This document shows positions 12,735 through 56,000 of a stretch of 64,000 nucleotides of DNA, piece by piece. The DNA is from Hyaloraphidium curvatum SAG 235-1 (taxonomy: Eukaryota > Fungi > Monoblepharomycota), in contig JAIVFI010000023.1 of assembly GCA_025558095.1 (NCBI GenBank), positions 496,001 through 560,000 on the forward strand, given 5' to 3'. How positions within the stretch are numbered: the first letter of the stretch is position 1; each line of letters begins with the position of its first letter. The notes under the pieces are model-generated. The model saw only the letters and a program-made list of their open reading frames with translations, was not told the DNA's origin and searched no databases. The position numbers were made by a program, and so were the translations under genes.

Positions 12735-13220
12735 TAATGCCCTCGTGCTCTATCGCTCTATTAGCATCAAGACACACATCGCATCTACCCCGCGATGCTG
12801 CAGTAGTACAGCGCGTCGACCGGCTGCGCAGGGTACTGCTTCCCCCCCGACGAGAGAGCCTTCTTCGCACGATCACGACTAGCGAACCAGCAATGCGCCC
12901 AATGATCCATCACGGGCACACGGTCTCCAGCGTCACCACCACCCCGAATCCGTTCAGCACCGAAAACAGCGCCACCGAGAGCGTCACCAGGGTCACGTCC
13001 TGATGACGCCGTACGACACGACGACCCCCAGGAACCTGGCGCTGTACCTCCCCGCATCCAGGTACGTCGCGAGCAGGTCCGCGTCGGCGGCCGCGGCGTC
13101 GATCAGCCCGCCTGGGGCGCCGGCGGTGAGCGCCTAGCGGGGGGCCTCGCGCAGGGCGAGCGCGGCGTCGCCGACCAGCCCGCGGATCGAGGACACCTGC
13201 GCGTTGGCCGCCGCAACGTT
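12735..13220. repeat. Copy 1 of a ~485 bp direct duplication (copy 2 at 14522-15007)
   Basis: Near-identical to 14522-15007 (offset 1787). Weaker similarity extends ~90 bp further left. Confidence 0.95.
12910..13220 (-). pseudogene. 3' fragment of the 7TM (GR-like) family gene
   Basis: Encodes VAAANAQVSSIRG...VTLETVCP. Has an added TAG (GAG>TAG, ~13135) and the same frameshift as the 14.7 kb copy. Confidence 0.85.
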
Positions 13221-13373: not shown

Positions 13374-14132
13374 CTACAAGCTCAACTGAGCGAAGTTGAG
13401 CTGAGACTTTGAGATCCCCAAGTGCTTCGCAAGGCGAAGCCGACGGTTTCGGGACCGAGCTGAATGTTCCCCATCTTCTGCTTCCGAATCGCTAGGATCG
13501 TCCTGGTAGAACTGGAGAGCCTTTTTCGATTTGTCCGAGTTCCAGATGTTGACGGTCCCATTCGGCAGCGTCTCGTTTCCGGCCACGAGCAAGTTTGCAA
13601 TTGCGATGCTCTCTGCCCACGGCTGGTCAAGAGCGTTGCGCCCTCCCGCGTCCTTCGGCCACACGATTCGATCATCGCGGCCCAGCAAACTGTTCGCGTG
13701 GAGGACTCGAAGGCGATCGAAGCCAATGTCGAGTGCTCCGACCTTGGTGTCCAGGGCCACGACCTTGGTGTCCAGGGCCGCGACCTTGTCTTCCAGGGCC
13801 GCGACCTTGGTTTCCAGCGCCGCGACCTTGGTTTCCAGCGCCGCGATCTTGGTTTCCAGCGCCGCAACCCTCGTGCCCAACTCTCCGACCTTGGCCTCAA
13901 GTGTACCGAGCTTGGAGCCGACCCGTGCCTCGAGTTCGTTGAGGGCGGTCTTCAGCCGAGCGTCGCTCCTCGCTTCAGACTCTTTCAGCGCGGTGTCCAG
14001 CCGGGCGTCGGTCCTCGCTTCGAGTTCCTGGAGGCGGTCTCCGAATCTCGTCTCAAGCGCAGCGAGGGCGGCCGTGAACCACGCCGGCGCCACGGCGTCC
14101 AGCGCAGCCAACGGCACATTTGCTGCCTCCAT
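13374..14132 (-). CDS. Coiled-coil protein with Mug135-like C-terminal domain, intronless
   Basis: Heptads (KVAALET)n, then RVLHANS...ALQFY...RRLRLAKHLGI, which resembles the fungal Mug135_C/DUF1773 pattern. Recognised from memory, not searched. Confidence 0.65.
   Translation of the reverse strand: MEAANVPLAALDAVAPAWFTAALAALETRFGDRLQELEARTDARLDTALKESEARSDARLKTALNELEARVGSKLGTLEAKVGELGTRVAALETKIAALETKVAALETKVAALEDKVAALDTKVVALDTKVGALDIGFDRLRVLHANSLLGRDDRIVWPKDAGGRNALDQPWAESIAIANLLVAGNETLPNGTVNIWNSDKSKKALQFYQDDPSDSEAEDGEHSARSRNRRLRLAKHLGISKSQLNFAQLSL
13740..13865. repeat. 21-bp tandem repeat x6 (coding heptads)
   Basis: Units GACCTTGG(T/G)TTCCAG(C/G)GCCGC; degenerate continuation to ~13930. Confidence 0.92.
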
Positions 14133-14521: not shown

Positions 14522-15007
14522 CAATGCCCTCGTGCTCTATCGCTCTATTAGCATCAAGACACACATCGCATCTACCCCGCGATGCTGCAGTAGTACAGCG
14601 CGTCGACCGGCTGCGCAGGGTACTGCTTCCCCCCCGACGAGAGAGCCTTCTTCGCACGATCACGACTCGCGAACCAGCAATGCGCCCAATGATCCATCAC
14701 GGGCACACGGTCTCCAGCGTCACCACCACCCCGAATCCGTTCAGCACCGAAAACAGCGCCACCGAGAGCGTCACCAGGGTCACGTCCTGATGACGCCGTA
14801 CGACACGACGACCCCCAGGAACCTGGCGCTGTACCTCCCCGCATCCAGGTACGTCGCGAGCAGGTCCGCGTCGGCGGCCGCGGCGTCGATCAGCCCGCCT
14901 GGGGCGCCGGCGGCGAGCGCCTCGCGGGGGGCCTCGCGCAGGGCGAGCGCGGCGTCGCCGACCAGCCCGCGGATCGAGGACACCTGTGCGTTGGCCGCCG
15001 CGACGTT
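14522..15007. repeat. Copy 2 of the ~485 bp direct duplication
   Basis: Matches 12735-13220. Confidence 0.95.
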
Positions 15008-16149
15008 GACCAGGTCCACCAGCGCAACTGCGGCGACGTAGAGGGGGTACACGACGTAGACCGCGGGGAGGCAGGAGAATGCGAGGACGTTGGCGAGGCC
15101 GCAGGCCACCGCGACGCCGGCCGAGATCAGCTGCGACCGCGCCGTGTTGAACCATCCGATGCGGCCGCGCCAGGCGGTGGCGAGGTGCGCGTGCAGGTCC
15201 ATGAAGAGATCCCGCCGCCGCGGGTTGCGGGAGAAGGGGGAGCCCGAGTCCAGGGCGGCACGGTACCGGTCCACGATCTCATCGAGCGCGCGCTTCATCG
15301 CTCGGTGCGCTACGCGGTGCGAGACGTCGAGCAGGGGCACGTTGGTGGAGAAGCGGACGACGCTGACCGTGAGTGTGTAGGACGTGATCGCGAGGAGGAG
15401 CAGGGCGGCGGAGGCGGCGGACCAGGGCGTTCCCCACGCGGCGGCAGCGGTGGCGGGGGAGACCAGCGGGGTCCAGTAGTGCAGCAGGCCGCAGAACACG
15501 ATCACGGCGAGTTTCGACGCGGCCTCCAGAACGCGGAGGAGGCCCGCGCGCCGCGCGATGCCGCTGGCGCAGCGATCGGCCGCGCACGGGCACAGGGGGT
15601 CCTTGGCGTCGTGATCGAGGAGGGGATGAATTTCGCCGAGCTGCCCGTCGACGAGCTGGATCCAGCGGGCCAGGACCGCCGCGCCGTGCCTGGAGAAGTC
15701 GTCGCCGCCACCCGCCGCTGCCACCGGGTCGTGGCGTACGCCGCAAACAGCGCCACGCCAAAGGTGGCCGAGAACATGCTGGAAAAAACGGTTGCGGTGC
15801 CCACGGCGAGCTGCGCGGTGCCGAAGCGCGCGCGGCTGAGGACCCACGGGATCGCGAGCACGGCCGGCTGCGCGACGTTGATGAGCGCGCCGCGGAGGAG
15901 CACGGGGCGCGCCCACGGCTCGAATGCGACCTGCAGCGCAAACATCCGCGCCAGCAGCCGGGACCGCGCAGCCAGCGCCGAGGTGAAGGCGGACAGCGTG
16001 AGGGGCGACGCGGCGCGGGCAGCATCGGCGGGGTCGGGACCGGCCCCGGGACGCGCGGGCAGCAGGAGCAGCCACTCCTCGGGAGACAGTGATAGGGCCC
16101 TGGCGGGGGCCGGAATGTCCACCGAGGTGGAGTCCTTGGCGGCCTCCAT
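14697..16149 (-). pseudogene. 7-TM protein, gustatory-receptor-like/DUF3537-like, paralog A; two frameshifts
   Basis: Collinear with 30179-31724 (RFGTAQLAVGTAT, DFSRHGAAVLARWIQ, LCPC, VRFSTNV, VDLVNVAAANAQ, VTLETVC). Frame changes at ~15720 (deletion relative to paralog B) and ~14785. Confidence 0.75.
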
Positions 16150-16414
16150 TGGATCGACGACTCGACGAGGCGATGGAATTCTCAGGAAGCTTCCGCCGCC
16201 AAGAACCAACGACGGGCGGGAGACGGTCCTTCATCTACAGATAAAATGCACTGGCGGACTGCCGCGAACCAAAGTAACAGGAGCGGCCGATCGTTTCTCT
16301 GGTGATAGCAATATGCTTGGCATGCACACCTGTGTTCCACCAGATCGACTCCTGTAGCAGTCCCAGTACGGACTGCTGACCTCAGACTTCACGGTCCAGT
16401 GATCCCCGTACTCT

Positions 16415-17654
16415 CTAGCCCGCAATGCTGCAGTAGTCCAGCGCGTTGATCGGCGCAGCCGGGTACTGCTTCGCCTCGCCCCCCGTGCCCGAGACGACCC
16501 AGCACGTGCCCCGGCACTTCTCGTCGTCCTCGATGGTCATGATGTACGCGTCGATGAGCTTGTCCATCGGGGTCCTGCGGCGGGATCGGGTCAGGGATCG
16601 GTGCGGAGTGAGGCGTCGCGTCGGGGGCAGCGATTCGACCGCCGTCGGCGTGCCGACGCCGCCGATCTGGGTACCCACCATCCGCCGAGGGTCTTGACGG
16701 CGTTGGCAAAGAACGGGTCCTTCTCGACGAGATCCTCGGCCGTCTTGATCCCCTTCTGCGGACGGGAGCGGGGGCTCAGCTTCTTGCCTTCGGTTCCGTG
16801 CACCGCCGAAGCCGCACCTCGGCGAACCGTCCTTTCGTGAATATGGGGGTGAAGGTCATCCCTGGGAGCTGCAGAAATCCACCGTACATGAGGTCCTTTG
16901 TTCGAAGTGTCGATTTGCACCCACAATTGCGTTGTACCGCGCCTTGCTCTTGCCGCGCGCGCGCTGGTCCATCAGAAACTGGGAGTTCGTCGTGAACATG
17001 AGCTGCGCGGCCTTGGTCGTCGCGTCTAAAAGGCCCCCATCAGTGAACCCGCTCCTCCTGCCCATGGCGCGCCTCACAGCTCATGCACGGGTGGTTCGTG
17101 ATGGCCGCCAGCGACGACGTCACGACAAACACCCCCGCCTTGTCCTCTTTGAGCCAGTGCGTGCTCGCCAGCCTCCCCAAGACCATCGTCCCGACCAGGT
17201 TGCCCTGGATCCCCCTCTCCCACTCCCCGTCGTCGGGCTTGTCCAAAAGCCGGAGCCAAGCCTGACACGAGAAGCCGGCGTTCGCGACGACGATGTCCAG
17301 ACCGCCCAGCCGCTCCGCCGCCTCCGCGAACGCGGCCTTGACCTCGTCCTCCTTCCCGGCGTCCATCTTGACGAACGACAGCGCGTCCTCGCCCGCGCCG
17401 AGCTCCGTGCGGAGCTGGGAGAGGACCTCCGACGCGAGCTCCGCGTTCCTGTTGGCCACGACGACGCGGGCGCCTTTCTCGAGGAGGCGGCGGGTCAGCG
17501 CGAGGCCGATGCCCTGGAATCGAGGTATTCGGGCCGGGAGCAGAGGCGTGGAGCGGAGAGCACGTCAGCGCTCCGGACGGCCCGGGCACGCGCGGGAGGG
17601 GCGAACCTCGGTGCCGCCCGTCACCAGCGCGGATTTGCCCTTGATCTCGAACAT
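16415..17654 (-). CDS. Short-chain dehydrogenase/reductase (15-PGDH-like), several introns
   Basis: ALVTGGTE|GIG, LDIVVANAG, VVTSSLAA, (Y)ATTKAA; C-terminus KQYPAAPINALDYCSIAG*. Confidence 0.85.
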
Positions 17655-27613: not shown

Positions 27614-28858
27614 ATGTCCTTGCCGAGCACGGTCGCGGCCCTTACCGCGTCTCTGCTTCATCTATCCGACTCCGCGGCGAACCCGGTGCGGAGCGCCTCT
27701 CTCGCTGCGCTCATTCTGGACAAGGCCGGGAACGAAGCCGCGCGAGCGTCGGGAGCGGCAGGCATCCTCCGCGGGGCAGAGGGCACCGCGGAGCAGATGC
27801 GATCCGATGCGGGGATCCACATCGCGAGCGTGGCAAAGACGATGACCGCCGTGCTGGTGTTCCAAGCGGCCGAGGAGGGGAGGCTCGGGGACGCGGGCAT
27901 TAATGCGACGCTTGCGTCCACCTTCGTACTTTCTCCGGACATTCTGAAGAAGCTCTATGCGGACAACTGGGATATCGTGACGGTCCGCCATCTGCTGACG
28001 CACACGAGCGGGCTCCGGGACGGGCAGACGGACGACAGCGCCCACACGGCCGTGGAGCTCGGTTCGGCTGCGCCAAACTCGCTCATCGGACGCCGGAACG
28101 CCGACATGGCCGCGCACATGGCCGCGCTCGCGGCGGGTAGCGTTCCGGACCCGGGCTTGAGGACGAAAAAGGCATGGCGGGTGTGGGATCCCGAGTGCAT
28201 TGAGGATGCCGAGGCGGGGATTCTCAACCATTTCCTCGTTCACGCGGCGCCGGGCGGTCCTATGTTCCCGGCAGGGCAGGGATTCCACTACTCGGACACG
28301 GCCTTTGCGATCCTCGCGCTCCTCGTCGAGAAACTACTCGGCGAACGGTACGCGCGGCTCCTCCGAACCCGAATCTTCGCACCCCTCGGCATGCATTCCA
28401 CATTTCTCGACGAAACGTCTCCACCCGACCCTCTTGACGCTGATGCCGTTATTTCCGACCCGTGGGTCGGATCCGTGCCCGTTCTCACCTCCGGAATCAG
28501 CCTCTCGAACGACTGGGGAGGCGGCGGGGTGGTCTCAACCCCGGAAGACCTGTGCCTCTTCATCTCTGGCCTACTCAACGGGAAGCTCTTCTGGCGCCGC
28601 GAAACCCTGGACCTGATGCTCGCCCCCGCGACGCCCCCCGGGCTCCCCGCGCGGTTCTCCGCGGTCGGCTGCGGGATCTTCCGGTTCGCGAACGGCAGGG
28701 GGCTGGAGATCCTGGGCCATACGGGGGCGTGGGGTGCCGCGATGCTGGGCTTGCCGGCGCTGGGGCTCTACATTGCGGGAACGGTCAACCTCAGGGCGGT
28801 GGGGGATTGGGCGGTCCGCGTCGCGGAGGAGCTTGCGGACCTTGTGGATCCCCGGTAG
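27614..28858 (+). CDS. Serine hydrolase, beta-lactamase/DD-peptidase family, intronless
   Basis: SxxK (IASVAKT), LLTHTSGL, FHYSDTAF (YxN variant), GGGGVVST, GHTG. Confidence 0.9.
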   Translation: MSLPSTVAALTASLLHLSDSAANPVRSASLAALILDKAGNEAARASGAAGILRGAEGTAEQMRSDAGIHIASVAKTMTAVLVFQAAEEGRLGDAGINATLASTFVLSPDILKKLYADNWDIVTVRHLLTHTSGLRDGQTDDSAHTAVELGSAAPNSLIGRRNADMAAHMAALAAGSVPDPGLRTKKAWRVWDPECIEDAEAGILNHFLVHAAPGGPMFPAGQGFHYSDTAFAILALLVEKLLGERYARLLRTRIFAPLGMHSTFLDETSPPDPLDADAVISDPWVGSVPVLTSGISLSNDWGGGGVVSTPEDLCLFISGLLNGKLFWRRETLDLMLAPATPPGLPARFSAVGCGIFRFANGRGLEILGHTGAWGAAMLGLPALGLYIAGTVNLRAVGDWAVRVAEELADLVDPR

Positions 28859-29379: not shown

Positions 29380-30018
29380 ATGGCCCCCGTTCTCCGCTCC
29401 CCGGTGCTCGCCTCCCTTTTCCTGCTCGCCCTCGCGGCGCTCGCGTTGGTGCCCTCCGCGCGGAGCTTCCGCTGAAGCTAACCCCGGCCGCTTTCTCCCT
29501 CGGTCACTACTCCCCGCCAGTTGGGCCGCACCGGGTCCCGCCGGCGCCGAGCTCACCGAGCGCGCCAGCTGCGCCGAGTGCGAGGTGGACGAGTATTGTG
29601 CGCCTTTCCCGCAGCTGGCCGGCTCGTCCCTGACCCTCCGTACCCCGCAGGCGAGTTCGGGGAATCCGGCGGCGTCTCCTGCGTCCGCTACCTCGACTCG
29701 CACTCTCTCTACAAGCGCTATCCGGCGCCCTCCTGCGGCTCCCTCGGCGAACCATGCTGCCCCGGCGTCACGAAGTGCAACTCCGGCCTCGGGTGCACCA
29801 ACTCGATATACAGCTCGGGCGTCTGCAGCTGCGGCGGATATCTCGAGGTTTGCTGCGGTGGCTCCACCTGCAATGAGGGCGCATGCGTGGTCGGCAGCAC
29901 CTGCTATTGCGGGGAGAAGGATTTTGCGTGCTGCACGCCGGGCCAACCGTGGAGCAGCGGGCCGTATTGGGACTTTGGGTGCTACAACAGCACTTGCGTG
30001 GACCACCTTTGCAACTAG
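29380..30018 (+). CDS. Secreted Cys-rich repeat protein (3 x 6-Cys modules), 2 coding introns plus a probable 5'UTR intron (29312-29358)
   Basis: Signal peptide MAPVLRSPVLASLFLLALAALAWA; LYKR dibasic site; three CG-x5-CC...C...C...C repeats. Confidence 0.78.
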
Positions 30019-30178: not shown

Positions 30179-31724
30179 TCAAAAGTCCTTGATCGTGCAG
30201 ATGGTTTCCATCGTCACAAACACCCCGAGCCCGCGGAGCACGGACCACAGCCCAACCGTGAGCGTGACGACCGCGATGCCCAGGCTACGCAGCGCCCCAA
30301 AAGTGACAACGAAGCCCAGCACCCTCGCGCGGAACCGGTCCACGTCCGCGTAGATGCCAAGCACCGTGAGGTCGCCGTCCATGGCGCTCAGCATGGCAGC
30401 CGAGCCGGGGACGGCTACGGCACGCCGGCGGAGCTCGCCGAGCTCTCTCGCTGCGTCGAGGTATAGGGATCGCAGGGATTCTATCTGCGCGTTGGCAGCG
30501 GCAACGTTGATCAGGTCCACGCCGATGACGACGCTCAGGATGTAGGCGAAGACAACGAGGTAGATGGCAGGGATGCAGGAACAGGCAAAGACGTTGATGA
30601 CCGCCAGAAGAGCCGTCGCACCGGCAAGAATCGCGTGCGAAACCGACACGTTGTACGTGCGGATCCGAGTTCGCCACGCCAAGGTGTAGAGTAGGTGGAG
30701 GTCCATATACGGTGCTGCAGCCGATCCATTGGGATCGGTCCATATTCCGTTGCCGTCCACGGCACTGCGGTACCGCGCGAGCACGTCCGAAAGCGAAATG
30801 CTCATGGCGCGACGTCCGACGCGGCGCGAAAGCTCTAGCAGAGCTACGTTGGTGGAAAAGCGGACGAGTGAATAGATAACATGAAACAGAATAGCACAGA
30901 CGGCGAGGGCGGCGAAGGGAGCCGACCACGGAGTCGTCCACGTTCGCCACGAAATCCCCGGGGATGCAAGCGGCGTCCAAAAGTACGTAAATGATCCGAA
31001 CGTCGAGATGACAAACTTGTAGACGGCTTCGGCGATGCGCTGGATCCCAGCGCGCCGCGGAAGATTACCGGCGCAGCTCGACGCCGGACAGGGGCACAGT
31101 TCGTCGCCGGGCACGTGCTCGAGCAACTTGCTTTTCGTTGGACCGAGGATCCCCGAGGTCCTTTGGATCCAGCGGGCCAATCCGGCGGCGCCGTGATTCG
31201 AAAAGTCTCCCGCCGGCTTTCGCGGTGGTGCCTGGGGCCCCGGAACGGCCTTGGCCGCGGCGGGCGCGCGTCCGATGGAAAGAGACGACAGGTAACTGGC
31301 AAACAAGGTGATCCCGACCGTGGCGACGAAGAAATCCAAGGTGAGGGTCGCCGTTCCGACGGCCAGCTGCAGCGTACCGAAACGGCCGTCGTTGAACAAC
31401 CAAGGCACAGGCAGCAGCGCGACGAACGAGCAGAAGAGCACGACGCCGCGCAAAAGGGCGCGCCGGGCCAGAGGCTCCAGCGCGACCTGCAACTTGACCG
31501 ACAGGGCAAATGGCGGCGATTCGGAAGCCAGCGCCGCCGTGAAGGCGTCCAAGTCGAGCGGCGTGGCACCATCGTCGCGGAGGCTCGCGGGCAGGATCCG
31601 CCGGCGGCGCCGCACCGGACAGCGAGGGCTGCTGCAACGGCCGAGCTGGCAGCACGACCAGCCAATCTGCAGCGCTGAGCAGCGGCGCTGGACCGCCGGT
31701 GTCTTTGTCCCCTGGTGGGTCCAT
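30179..31724 (-). CDS. 7-TM protein, gustatory-receptor-like/DUF3537-like, paralog B; one N-terminal frame break (~31590-31620)
   Basis: Seven hydrophobic segments in one ~470-codon frame. The ATG-initiated N-terminus (LSAADWLVVLPARP, matching paralog A) is in a different frame. Confidence 0.7.
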
Positions 31725-31865
31725 TTCCGTGCCTTGGGAGACAGGGAGGAGAGACCCAAAGTCAGAGTTCACCGCGGACTCCACACACTGCGATTGCACC
31801 AATCCACCAAATCGATGATGCATTCAGTGTCGCGATAAGGATACGTTGATGTCGACAGACTATAG

Positions 31866-33909
31866 CTACTGTGCCATCCTCCCCAAATCCCCTCTCAATC
31901 CTTCGGCATCCGCGGCAACCGAGAAGACGAACCGATCCGGCCTGATGACGAGGAACCTCGCCCGCGCGGGCCTGCTCCCCGCAGCCCAGCTCCACCAGGC
32001 TGCAGGAGACAGCCACGACCACCATCCACGCGGCGCGAGCAGTCCCAGCTCGGCATGCACCCGCGCGGGATCGTAGCCTTCCTTAGCGGCGCCCGCGGGA
32101 AGCTGCTGGGGATCCTGCACCACCGGGAGCACGCCGTCCACGTTGGGATCAGGCCCGAGGGCCAGGCCCGCGACGGTGACCTCGGCTTGCTTCCAGTGCG
32201 GAGCCGAGGATGCGAGCGCGGCTCGGGCGTCCTCGATCGTCTTGCGCACGAAGCCCGCGTCCCCTTCCCCCTCGGCGAACACCGCCAGCACCACGAACCG
32301 CACCCTCTCCCCCTCCCCCGACAGGCCAAACAGCGCATCGTCCAGCCTCTCCGCCTTGCCGGCGCATGCCACCCAGACCTGCGGCACCATCCAACCACCT
32401 TTCCCGTCCACGAACCACCCCTTCCCCCCGGCGCCGATCCCCGGCGTGGCCGCGTTCCCGTCCTTGCCGTCGTACCGCGGCAGCGGCTTGAACCGCATGT
32501 GCTCCAGGAACTCCCCCGCGGGGGATACGAACCGCACTAAGGACGCGATCGCGGCGTCGCGGACCGCCGCCAGCAGCGGTTGGCGCAGGGTGAAGAAGGT
32601 GCCCATGGCCGCCGAGACGGCCATCATGGAGCGGGTGTGCGGGCCGCGCTCGGCGGCGTAGCTGTCGAGGAGGTCCGCGGGGGAGTCGGGGGTGGAGAGG
32701 GCGAGGGAGAGCTTCCATGCGAGGTTGAAGGCGTCGCGGATGCCAGAGTTCATGCCCTGGCCCACTGTTCGAAGGTCAGAAGACGTGCAATGCGACCGTT
32801 GCAAGAGACCCACTGAACGGGCCCATGGTGTGGGCAGCGTCGCCGGCAAGGAACAGGCGTCCGAACCTCCACTCCCTGGCGATGCGCATGTCGAACCTGT
32901 ACAGCTGGCTCCGCAGCACGTCCAGCGACGACCACGGGTACTCGAACTCCTCCCCCTTGTAGCGCAGCCTGAGCATCCCGTGGCGGTCCACGATTTGCTT
33001 GACGAGCTCGATCGAAGCTTCGGGGTACGGCACGTCGTCCGCCTTGTCGCCGAGCAGCTTGCGGGCTTCTTCGGCGTCGCCGGGGGGGATGAGCCATTCC
33101 CAGCGGTACTGTCGGTCCGAGGGCGGTCCGACGCGGGAGGCGATCGACGGGCGGGACGGGTCGCAGATGAAGCGGAACTCGGGGGGAAAGAAGAGGTCGT
33201 GCACTTCGGAGGGCGAGAGGGTGTGCGGCGAGTGAAGGAGGGGAAAGTCGGGCGGGGGCGGGCGCACGGTCACCGAGATGGTGATCCACGCCTCCGGGTA
33301 GCGGGCGCCTTCCATCTCGACAAGCCCCTTGAGCACCTGATTCCTCACGGTGCCGGTCTTTCCATCCGACCCGACGACGAACTTGCACCTGACGACGCGC
33401 TCCTCCGCATCCGGCGCATCCGTCGGCCTGAAGTAGACCCGGCAAGGGTGCTCTTCGCCCGCTGCACCGCCGTCCGAGAAGCCCTCGATGCGAGTCACCT
33501 GCTGGCCGCGGAGAAACGCCCCCTTCCCCCCCGCGCGCGCCGCGAACTCGTCCGCCAGGATCCTCTCCAGTATCGGCTGGTGGAAAAACTGCAGCGCCCC
33601 GTGCCCGTTTCCCAAATCGCGCGTCGACTTGAGCCTCAGGAACTCTGGTTCCCCCGGCGCCGCCCGCGCGTGGTACGTGACCGCCGCGGGCTCGTGGCAC
33701 GCGTTTGCCACGACGGTGTCGCGCAGCCCGAACGCCTGGTACAGCCGCATCGCCTCGTCGTCGAAGGAGAAGGCGCGGGGGACGGTGGGTATTTCGGCAT
33801 CGCGCTCCAGGACCAGCGTGCTCACGCCGTGCGACGCGAGGAACACGGCGAGGGTGGCGCCGACGGGGCCGCCGCCGACAATGACGACGTCGTAGGCCTC
33901 GGCGGACAT
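31866..33909 (-). CDS. FAD-dependent aromatic hydroxylase (MhpA/PheA family), 1 intron
   Basis: VVIVGGGPVG, PRAFSFDDEAMR, FVVGSDG, LAGDAAHTMGPF|xGQGMNSGIRDAFNLAWKL, C-terminal VIRPDRFV. Confidence 0.92.
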
Positions 33910-52809: not shown

Positions 52810-53063
52810 GTCGGCGGAGAAAAGGCGGGCAATGGGGCGCGGCGCAGGGGTTGCGGGGTTGGGGAGCGATTTGGGCACGTGCGGCCGCCCCGCCCCGCCC
52901 GGAACATCTTCGGGAGATCCTGGGTGCACCCGGGTCGGCCGCCTCTCCAAATCTTTGAAGCGCGTCCTTCAGACAGAGCTTCGTTCGACAGAGATCGGCA
53001 TCGCGCCGCTACAATACATTAACTTAGCCCCTGGCGCCCCGGGGCCGGGTATCGACCACCGCC

Positions 53064-56000
53064 TCACTTCCCCCCCGCCGCCTCCGCCGCCTCCCCGGCC
53101 TGCCCGTGCACCTCCGCCCCCTTCTGCGCAGCCAGCGCCTCCCACCCCTCCGGTATCCTCCTGCACGCCCTGATGGCCGCCGCCAGCGCGTTCATGTCGA
53201 TCGGCTTGGAGATGTAGGCGTCCATCCCCGCCTGGAGGCACGCCTCGCGCTCGTTCAGCAGCGCGTTGGCGGTCAGCGCGATGATGGTCGGCTGCCGCGC
53301 CTTGGGGATCTCGTCGCGGATGCGCTTGGTGGCCTCGAAGCCGTCGAGGATCGCTGGCATGGGAGGAATGAGGTCGGGCAGGGCATGTACCTGCGGCGAG
53401 CTGGTACTCACGCATCTGCACGTCCATGAGCACGCAGTCGTACACCTTGTCCGTGATGGCGTTGACACCCTCCAGGCCGTTGTTGGCCACGTCGGCCGAG
53501 AACCCGGCGCGCTTGAGCATCCGCAGCGCGATCTGCTGGTTGATCAAATTGTCCTCCACCAGCAGGATCCGCAGGCCCACGTCGGCCTGCCAGTCCGTCG
53601 AGGGGGTGCGGCTGACGTCGGCGGCGGGCTGAGGGGCGGCGAGCTTGTCGGGGGATGCGTGGTTGGAGCGCGGAGGGAAAGGGGCGGGCTGGGAAGCCGA
53701 GACGGCCTCCCAGGTCTGGTTGGAGCGGGTAGAGGTGGGGCCCGTGCGCACGCCGCGGGCGGTGTCCCAGGCTGCCAGCGCGGCGATCGACGCGGGGTTC
53801 ACGGTGCCGTTCATTGGGGCTGGGCGTGAAACGGGACCGGTCAGCGGCGAACTGGTCCCAAACGGCCGAGGAAGCCTACCGCTCGGCTGCCGCTTCTGCT
53901 TCCTCCCCGCGCTGTCCCTGCTCTGCCTCGCCGGCTCCACCACAAGCACGTCCACCAGCACGTCGAACATCCTGCTCGCGCGCACTGGCTTGGTCAGGAT
54001 CCGCGTAAAGTTGGCCTTGCGCGGGTCGTGCATGTCCAGGTCCTTGCCCAGCGAGGTGAGCATGATGAGCGGGATCCCGGGGTCGATCTTGCGGATCTCG
54101 TCCGAGAGCTCCAGCCCGTCCTGGTCCGGCATCGCCATGTCCAGGATGCACACGTCGAACCGCTTGTTGCTGTGCGCCAGCAGGTCCAGCGCTTCGAGCG
54201 CGTTCGAGACCGCGACCGTGTCCGTCTTCCATCCCAGCAGCTGCAGCGTGAGCACCCTCCTGTTCGTCGACACGTCGTCGACGCAGAGGATCCGCTTGCC
54301 CGACAGCAGCGTGTTCTCCTCCATGTGCTTTGGCCGCGAGATCTCGCTCTCGAGGGCACCCGGTGCGTCGAGCGTGAAGTGGAACGTAGACCCCACCCCG
54401 ACCTTGCTCTCGACCCATATCCGCCCGTTCATCTTCTCCACCAGCCGCTTGGATATGGCCAGGCCCAGGCCGGTGCCCCCGTACCGCCGCGTCGTGGAGG
54501 CGTCCACCTGCGAGAAGCTCTTGAACAGCCTGTCGATCCGCTCGGCGGGGATGCCGATGCCCGTGTCGCGCACGTAGAAGTGCAGCGCGTAGTTCCGCCG
54601 CCGGAGCGGCTGGTCCGACACGGCGAGCGAGGCGGGGCCGTCCTCGGGCTTCTTGGCAAAGTCCGCGAGCACGGGCACCTTCGACATGGTCGCGCTCGCG
54701 CGCTGCAGCCCGGGCCGCTTGGGGGCGCCGTCGGCCGCCGCCGGGGGCGAGGAAGACACCCCGCTCCGGGGGATCGTGAGCGCCTTGGGCGGCGGCGCCC
54801 GCTCCTTGGGCACTGCGACGACGCCAGACTGCAGGGTCTGCGTGGCGGTGTCGCTCCGCCGCCGCTCCAGCTTGGCCGGCCGGTCCAAGGAGTCCTTGTC
54901 GTCAGTCATGCTGATGAGCTCCACGCCCACGACCACCTCCCCGGCCGGGGTGAACTTGACGGCTGGCAAACACTCATCAGCAAACGCAAAGTTGATCCGT
55001 GACAGTCGCCCACCATTGTTCATCAAATTCAGCAGGATCTGCCTCAGCCTCCCCACATCCCCCACGATCCCCAGCGGCAGGTTGGGCTCGAACACGCACA
55101 TGACCTCGATCCGCTTCTCGGCAGCCTTGGCCGAGACCAGGTCCAGCGCCTCCTCAACGCACTCGCGGAGGTTGAAGGGGGCCATTTCGAGCTCCAGGTG
55201 GCCGGATTCGAGCTTGCTGAAGTCTGAGGGGGGTGCGGGGATCAGCCGATGTGGGAGCGGTCCGAGGGGTAGGCCCACCGAGGATCTCGTCAATGATCCG
55301 CAGCAGCGCGTTGCCAGAGTTCTTGATTACGCTGGCAAACTCGCGCTGGTTCGAATTCAGATCCGTTTCCAGAAGAAGATCAGTCTGTGGGTTGGGTGGA
55401 TCAATCAAAGGAGCTTCTTTCCCGGCGACACCATCCCTTCCCAACCCACCATCCCAATGACGCCGTTCATCGGCGTCCTGATCTCGTGCGACACTGGAGA
55501 CAAAAGGGTCAGGCCGTTCCCCAAGGCCGCCAAGCCCCACCCACTGGTCGCCAGGAACGCCGACTTTGCCTGGTTCGCCAGCTCCGCGCTAGCCTTGGCG
55601 CGAATCAGGTCCCGTTCAAACTTCTTCATCGGCGTCACGTCCCGCAGCACCAGCAGGCTGCCGCGGGACTTGCTCTCGTACAAGTCGATCGTCCGCTGCG
55701 AGCGGTGCGGCACAACCAGCTCCATGGGGCCGTTGCCGGTGCCGCTCGGGCCGGGGACGACCAGCTCGGGGCGCAAGGACCGCCGCCGGAGCTCGTTCCC
55801 CGCCGCGTCGCGCGCCTTGGCCTGCTCGACCATGCTCGCGAACGAGGAGCTGATGTGCGTCACGGCGGGGTCCCCGGCCTGCGCCGCACTGCGCTTGTCC
55901 CCCGCGATGAAGAAGTCGTCCTCGTCGTCGTCCGGGCCCGAGAGCGACGGCGACGTCTCCTGCGCCAGCAGCGTCGTCACCGAGACCAGGTAGATCCTGG

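Follow-up and report, generated by a model that had tools for sequence, protein, structure and literature searches.

A transcribed, frameshifted gene of Hyaloraphidium curvatum belongs to a large fungal family with a predicted insect receptor-like membrane fold

Results

The window analyzed here is a 64,000-nucleotide stretch of the genome of the fungus Hyaloraphidium curvatum SAG 235-1 (contig JAIVFI010000023.1, positions 496,001 to 560,000), and it holds three broken copies of a gene for a protein with seven transmembrane helices (TM1 to TM7). Structure models place this protein in the fold of the seven-transmembrane ion channels (7TMICs), the fold of the odorant receptors (ORs) and the gustatory receptors (GRs) of insects, and we regard this assignment as very probable. 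The copies, in window coordinates, are as follows.

30179-31724, minus strand: copy 1, intronless gene with predicted 7TMIC fold, transcribed, with a single +1 shift close to its 5' end
31570-31600, minus strand: frame-change region of copy 1, +1 shift between the frame of the ATG at 31724 and the seven-helix open reading frame (ORF)
14697-16149, minus strand: copy 2, paralog with frameshifts near 15710 and 14783, pseudogene
12913-13219, minus strand: copy 3, relic, duplicating the 3' end of copy 2 at 98.8% identity

The locus described in the initial annotation, 30179-31724, is not a single gene frame. The ATG at 31724 starts the N-terminal motif of the family in a frame that differs from the seven-helix ORF (30179-31759, minus strand) and ends at a stop at 31065. 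Every motif quoted in that annotation lies within the ORF, and all were recovered at the two loci it described. A contig of run X1 spanning 30186-31729 is the sequence of copy 1 with no indels, mismatches or splices, and the run behaves as RNA, with a 49-nt intron spliced out in the gene beside copy 1. Because the RNA contig is identical to the genome, the frameshift is real, the gene is transcribed, and an assembly error is ruled out as the source of the shift. Rescue by splicing of 55- or 37-nt GT-AG stretches was rejected as well, since the splice sites are nonconsensus, a conserved motif would be lost, and the RNA contig is unspliced there, with the limit that such contigs drop rare variants and that rare splicing of copy 1 would escape them. 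Against its nearest paralogs, copy 1 has a ratio of nonsynonymous to synonymous substitutions (dN/dS) of 0.23-0.30, albeit at a high dS, and this low ratio suggests that it broke recently; it is probably a young transcribed pseudogene.

Copies 1 and 2, both on the minus strand, are collinear paralogs, as first annotated, with 44% identity across 279 codons; the frameshifts in both were not part of that annotation. The dN/dS of copy 2 is 0.46-0.67, compared to 0.23-0.41 in other pairs, and its constraint is relaxed. Copy 3 shares a frameshift with copy 2 at a duplication spacing of 1787 bp. A 62-nt repeat is found three times (12784-12845, 14571-14632, and 16414-16475, with spacings of 1787 and 1843 bp), and the position of these repeats, flanking copy 2 and the relic, points to a local tandem duplication.

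The description of the genes as locally multicopy gained a third, partial copy but understated the size of the family, which is genome-wide with hundreds of copies. In the assembly (31.9 Mb, 55 contigs), one protein query found 90 loci (91 scored of 757 candidates), and six single-protein queries together found at least 207 distinct loci by hand count, with the last queries still adding loci; pieces of broken copies were searched separately. We estimate a total of 300-450 loci, the counted figure being 207 only. The membrane core stands in a single open frame at about 67 of the 90 loci of the first query (hand count). A profile search of 1.84 billion representatives (50% identity clusters) returned 474 proteins, 427 of them with an E value of <1e-10, and 18 of the 20 looked up within the top 150 matches were of H. 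curvatum origin.

The paralogs share about 30% identity and branch deeply, with pairwise dN/dS values of 0.23-0.41 and a third-position GC content (GC3) of 0.66-0.92, and at the level of sequence comparison the family is shown to be under purifying selection. Broken copies exist beside intact ones, and the family evolves by birth and death. It is mostly intronless, with single open frames at most loci and the unspliced transcript contig for copy 1. A P0151-like subfamily is split at an identical point near residue 370 in three loci (G000:C16:601576-603136, C7:575689-577256, and C6:185522-187028), which suggests a shared short intron within an otherwise intronless family.

Word-based homolog searches matched only "hypothetical protein" entries of H. 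curvatum and one ENA protein, and an ENA metagenome scaffold encodes a member with 50% identity to a close paralog. Members are also carried by two contigs (54% GC) of run SRR26194948, in one case as a tandem pair, and an adjoining gene shows 65-73% identity with the H. curvatum counterpart; judging from these sequences, the contigs probably derive from related fungi. Frameshifted copies are found in relatives too (the second copy of a tandem on L072:2163-5656 and a split copy on L071:1-1219), and copy decay is thus not confined to H. curvatum. A JGI metagenome scan with the family protein P0001 gave no matches.

Seven hydrophobic segments are seen in the family-averaged hydropathy of 68 members, the set behind all loop counts given here, and also in the AlphaFold2 (AF2) model, in agreement with the initial annotation. 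Loops 2-3, 4-5, and 6-7 are long (median, 82, 74, and 70 amino acids [aa]) and basic, with 3.5-4.4 Lys/Arg lying no more than 15 residues from the membrane, whereas loops 1-2, 3-4, and 5-6 are short (median, 9, 13, and 3 aa) and have 0-1.0; the corresponding count is 2.2 before TM1 versus 0.5 at the C terminus. The N-in/C-out topology proposed earlier, the opposite of that of G-protein-coupled receptors (GPCRs), is supported because of these positive-inside counts, and the models agree with it; an N-out prediction was not seen. The features of copy 1, in the order of the protein, are given below.

31295-31453, minus strand: TM1 and TM2 with a short outer loop (hydropathy, AF2, loop counts)
31073-31117, minus strand: His-x6-Cys-x-Cys-x4-Cys in cytosolic loop 2-3 (68/68; 121-122/123)
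30863-31030, minus strand: TM3 and TM4, TM4 running on as a long cytosolic helix (residues 247-278)
30503-30643, minus strand: TM5 and TM6 joined by a 3-residue outer loop, TM6 being one helix through AAANAQI to residue 389
30575-30577, minus strand: codon of the near-invariant Cys of loop 5-6, outer face
30308-30400, minus strand: TM7a-like cytosolic helix and short beta-hairpin (DSSP H396-412, strands 421-422 and 425-426)
30230-30301, minus strand: TM7b, predicted pore helix (H429-452 in the model)
30197-30199, minus strand: near-invariant C-terminal Cys, outer face

Two high-confidence AF2 models, of the window ORF and of P0001, have OR, GR, and Orco structures as their sole full-length matches, which supports the suggestion of a divergent OR/GR-like fold. 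In each model, seven different chains can be aligned along about 300-340 residues that run from TM0/TM1 to TM7b, and unrelated matches are mostly limited to the cytosolic bundle. TM4, TM5, and TM6 extend into the cytosol as anchor-type helices (helices 221-240 plus 247-278, 292-311 plus 314-335, and 340-389; P0001 is alike), and in the copy 1 model the TM6 extension is anchor domain-like. Helices 12-22 and 24-40 precede TM1 and align with the OR/GR N termini; they may correspond to the N-terminal re-entrant loop TM0, an element that the authors of the 7TMIC definition treat as optional. The modeled TM7 is split into H396-412, a hairpin, and H429-452; that of BmGr9 is split into S7a (395-409) and S7b (424-444) (PMC11100771). 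The near-invariant Gly of the GF element, annotated as preceding the split TM7, sits instead in the hairpin between TM7a and TM7b. No natural GPCR was among the top 50 VIA structural rows of either model, and a GPCR or transporter fold was rejected, there being no full-length match to either and a charge bias opposite to that of an N-out protein.

Pfam scans of single proteins and of the 68 members gave no relevant match and none to PHTF, Tmp39, or PF12056, and a PDB sequence search gave no significant match; neither type of search linked the family by sequence profile to known 7TMIC members. PHTF, a known member, likewise has no pairwise similarity to Orco. A search of the H. curvatum genome with PF08395, PF12056, and PF10271 found no match, which is weak since the controls were silent too. 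On its modeled structure, the family fits the structural part of the Himmel/Benton definition of the 7TMIC superfamily and falls outside the definition of the animal GR-like proteins (GRLs).

Uncharacterized giant-virus proteins of about 440 aa in BFVD resemble the model (A0A3G4ZRZ0 of Edafosvirus, Foldseek probability 1.00 and E 0.005; A0A1V0SCD1 of Catovirus CTV1, 0.94 and E 0.15), and a mostly Nucleocytoviricota Atlas cluster matches it with TM values of 0.48/0.67. By this modeled likeness, they may be viral 7TMIC-fold proteins; viruses are not mentioned in the Himmel preprint text.

The absence of the GR motif TYxxxxxQF, reported initially for this locus, extends to the family, with 0 of 153 proteins matching the pattern (T/S)Yhhhhh(Q/K/E)(F/L/M). 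For each of the two models, structural alignment places Val449 of the window protein (Ile495 of P0001) on BmGr9 Phe444 at its end point and on MhOr5 Val468 one residue before its end point, both of these being gate residues. Eight residues back, the near-invariant Thr441 (118/123) falls on BmGr9 Thr436, which is the T of the motif TYhhhhhQF; seven residues further back, a mostly Thr position falls on Thr429 (BmGr9 gate and pore residues from PMC11100771); this register is read from alignment end points only and assumes an ungapped helix. The Tyr and Gln of the motif are replaced, Gly stands at the position of BmGr9 Ile440, and Arg/Lys is near invariant at both ends of TM7b (Arg433, and Arg451 just outside the gate position). 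A pore at TM7b is plausible from the models, and its selectivity may differ from that of the insect cation channels.

The His/Cys3 motif of loop 2-3 is also kept in environmental relatives and, from its spacing and invariance, looks like a candidate cytosolic zinc site. The model shows short strands beside the Cys of loop 5-6 and the C-terminal Cys, and these two residues probably form an outer disulfide.

Among the neighboring genes are a beta-lactamase-family (serine hydrolase) gene (27614-28858, plus strand), part of a flavin adenine dinucleotide (FAD)-binding monooxygenase (31866-32849, minus strand), and a hybrid histidine kinase that carries two receiver domains (52969-55293, minus strand). 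A separate RNA contig of low depth (29391-30139) covers a Cys-rich 165-aa ORF (29521-30018, plus strand) that is convergent with copy 1 and lacks a Pfam match; the ORF may be the 3' portion of a gene for a secreted protein. A 252-aa ORF (13374-14132, minus strand) separates copy 2 from its duplicated 3' end; it contains a 21-bp (heptad) tandem repeat (13727-13915), and its only match in Pfam is a coiled coil.

Discussion

Our best explanation is that copy 1 is a recently broken, transcribed member of a large birth-and-death family of intronless 7TMIC-fold genes whose intact members are ligand-gated channels, an account that we see as evenly poised between right and wrong. Given the fold, an ion channel is reasonably probable by analogy, and given a channel, gating by diverse outside ligands is quite probable on the same grounds. 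As in the insect ORs and GRs, intact members would assemble as tetramers through the cytosolic TM4-TM7a bundle, TM7b would line a central pore, contributing a ring of Thr residues and an aliphatic gate, and the variable TM1-TM6 bundle would bind small molecules from outside and thereby open the channel. The repertoire would be a broad chemosensory array with genes constantly born and lost, as the three broken copies would illustrate, and it is from this analogy that we infer the label of ligand-gated chemoreceptor.

The same fold could also serve a nonchemosensory role, as a membrane protein of the endoplasmic reticulum (ER) or an organelle, a scaffold, or a ligand-independent conductance, like PHTF (Class-B) or TMEM39. 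The long loop 2-3 of the family is a hallmark of PHTF-like Class-B proteins, the function-unknown PHTF1 is ER localized, TMEM39B (PF10271) lies closest among the named clusters in language-model features (0.94, 202/256 shared; P0001, window:30182-31585), and the pore helix deviates from the GR motif. However, PHTFs are conserved and low copy, hundreds of paralogs of about 30% identity together with pseudogenes better suit ligand-diversified receptors, and 0 of 68 members match PHTF or Tmp39 in Pfam, so that we consider such a role unlikely; the Cys pair on the noncytosolic face suits the cell surface and the lumen equally. Surface receptors or pores of this fold might instead act in non-self recognition or defense (the sensing of microbes, parasites, or kin, whereby ion flux would signal alarm or cell death) and not in nutrient or odor sensing. 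Recognition systems are typically large, fast-turnover families, the organism is nonmotile, and giant viruses have proteins of similar fold, but none of the window genes that were scanned was a linked NLR, effector, or toxin gene, and the pairwise dN/dS is well below 1, which makes this decidedly unlikely in our view.

That the match to ORs and GRs reflects convergence of a helical membrane bundle in an unrelated seven-helix protein is very unlikely, since seven OR/GR/Orco chains align full-length in both models while unrelated matches mostly cover the cytosolic bundle, and the split TM7, the topology, and the gate register are all in agreement. Passive spread by a mobile element or segmental duplication, with most copies nonfunctional, would fit genes that are intronless and dispersed, a window in which 3 of 3 copies are broken, and the origin of one of these from the 1787-bp-spaced duplication. 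We find it hardly credible in view of the open membrane core at about 67 of 90 loci, the dN/dS (0.23-0.41) and GC3 (0.66-0.92) values, the deep divergence of the paralogs, and the retention of the family in other genomes.

The fungal proteins resemble the insect ORs and GRs (MhOR5 7LIC, AaegOR10 8V02, ApOR5-Orco 8Z9Z/8Z9A, DmGr43a 8JM9, and BmGr9 8VC1) in having seven helices, a predicted N-in/C-out topology, TM4-6 that reach far into the cytosol, a split TM7, a Thr and an aliphatic gate residue in register, and a large birth-and-death repertoire. They differ in sequence (7-13% identity), in length (about 480-540 aa), in the 80-aa loop 2-3 with its His/Cys3 motif, in a probable outer disulfide and small outer beta-sheet, in Arg at both ends of TM7b, and in lacking the Y and Q of TYhhhhhQF; their genes are mostly intronless and do not have the conserved 3' introns of animal GR/GRL genes. 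The chytrid SpunGRL1 and SpalGRL1 (PMC7746228), likened here by description, are also 7TMICs of early-diverging fungi with 1 of 4 TM7 motif positions kept but are present as one gene per genome, in contrast to hundreds in H. curvatum; no Spizellomyces protein was returned by the word-based searches. The PHTF-like Class-B proteins, which are marked by a long intracellular loop 1, are conserved, low copy, and Pfam detectable, whereas the fungal family has no such match. Plant DUF3537 proteins share the 7TMIC topology and a largely lost TM7 motif and are a language-model feature neighbor (0.90), but the fungal family has no PF12056 match and the plant families have 4-12 members (PMC7746228).

The nonanimal 7TMIC repertoires reported so far are small, with a single Spizellomyces gene, six genes in Thecamonas and Vitrella, and 4-12 in plants; in fungi, 7TMICs are known from two species of Spizellomyces, each with a single gene (PMC7746228). 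The at least 207 fungal loci exceed the GR counts of both Drosophila (68) and Helicoverpa armigera (197) (PMC12635824). Hyaloraphidium is not mentioned in the tree-of-life 7TMIC screen, and our literature searches found no paper on the fungal family or linking Hyaloraphidium to such receptors. They also found none linking TMEM39 to 7TMICs, and TMEM39 may be an unrecognized relative of the fold.

H. curvatum, a small freshwater fungus, is a nonflagellated member of the Monoblepharidomycota (PMC8371127). We propose, tentatively and at slightly less than even confidence, that Hyaloraphidium and its relatives arrived independently at a set of ligand-gated 7TMIC channels on the scale of insects (several hundred genes), equipped with a cytosolic His/Cys3 metal site, an outer disulfide, and an Arg-flanked pore of their own. 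Ligand gating of nonanimal 7TMICs is an open question in the field (PMC12635824). With H. curvatum in culture and its hundreds of paralogs intronless and easy to clone, this question can be tested directly. A second large radiation of the fold would also be material for the study of ligand pockets and pore selectivity. If true, our proposal would mean that a single-celled fungus has ionotropic chemosensation on the scale of an animal, and it raises the question of what a nonmotile fungus senses.
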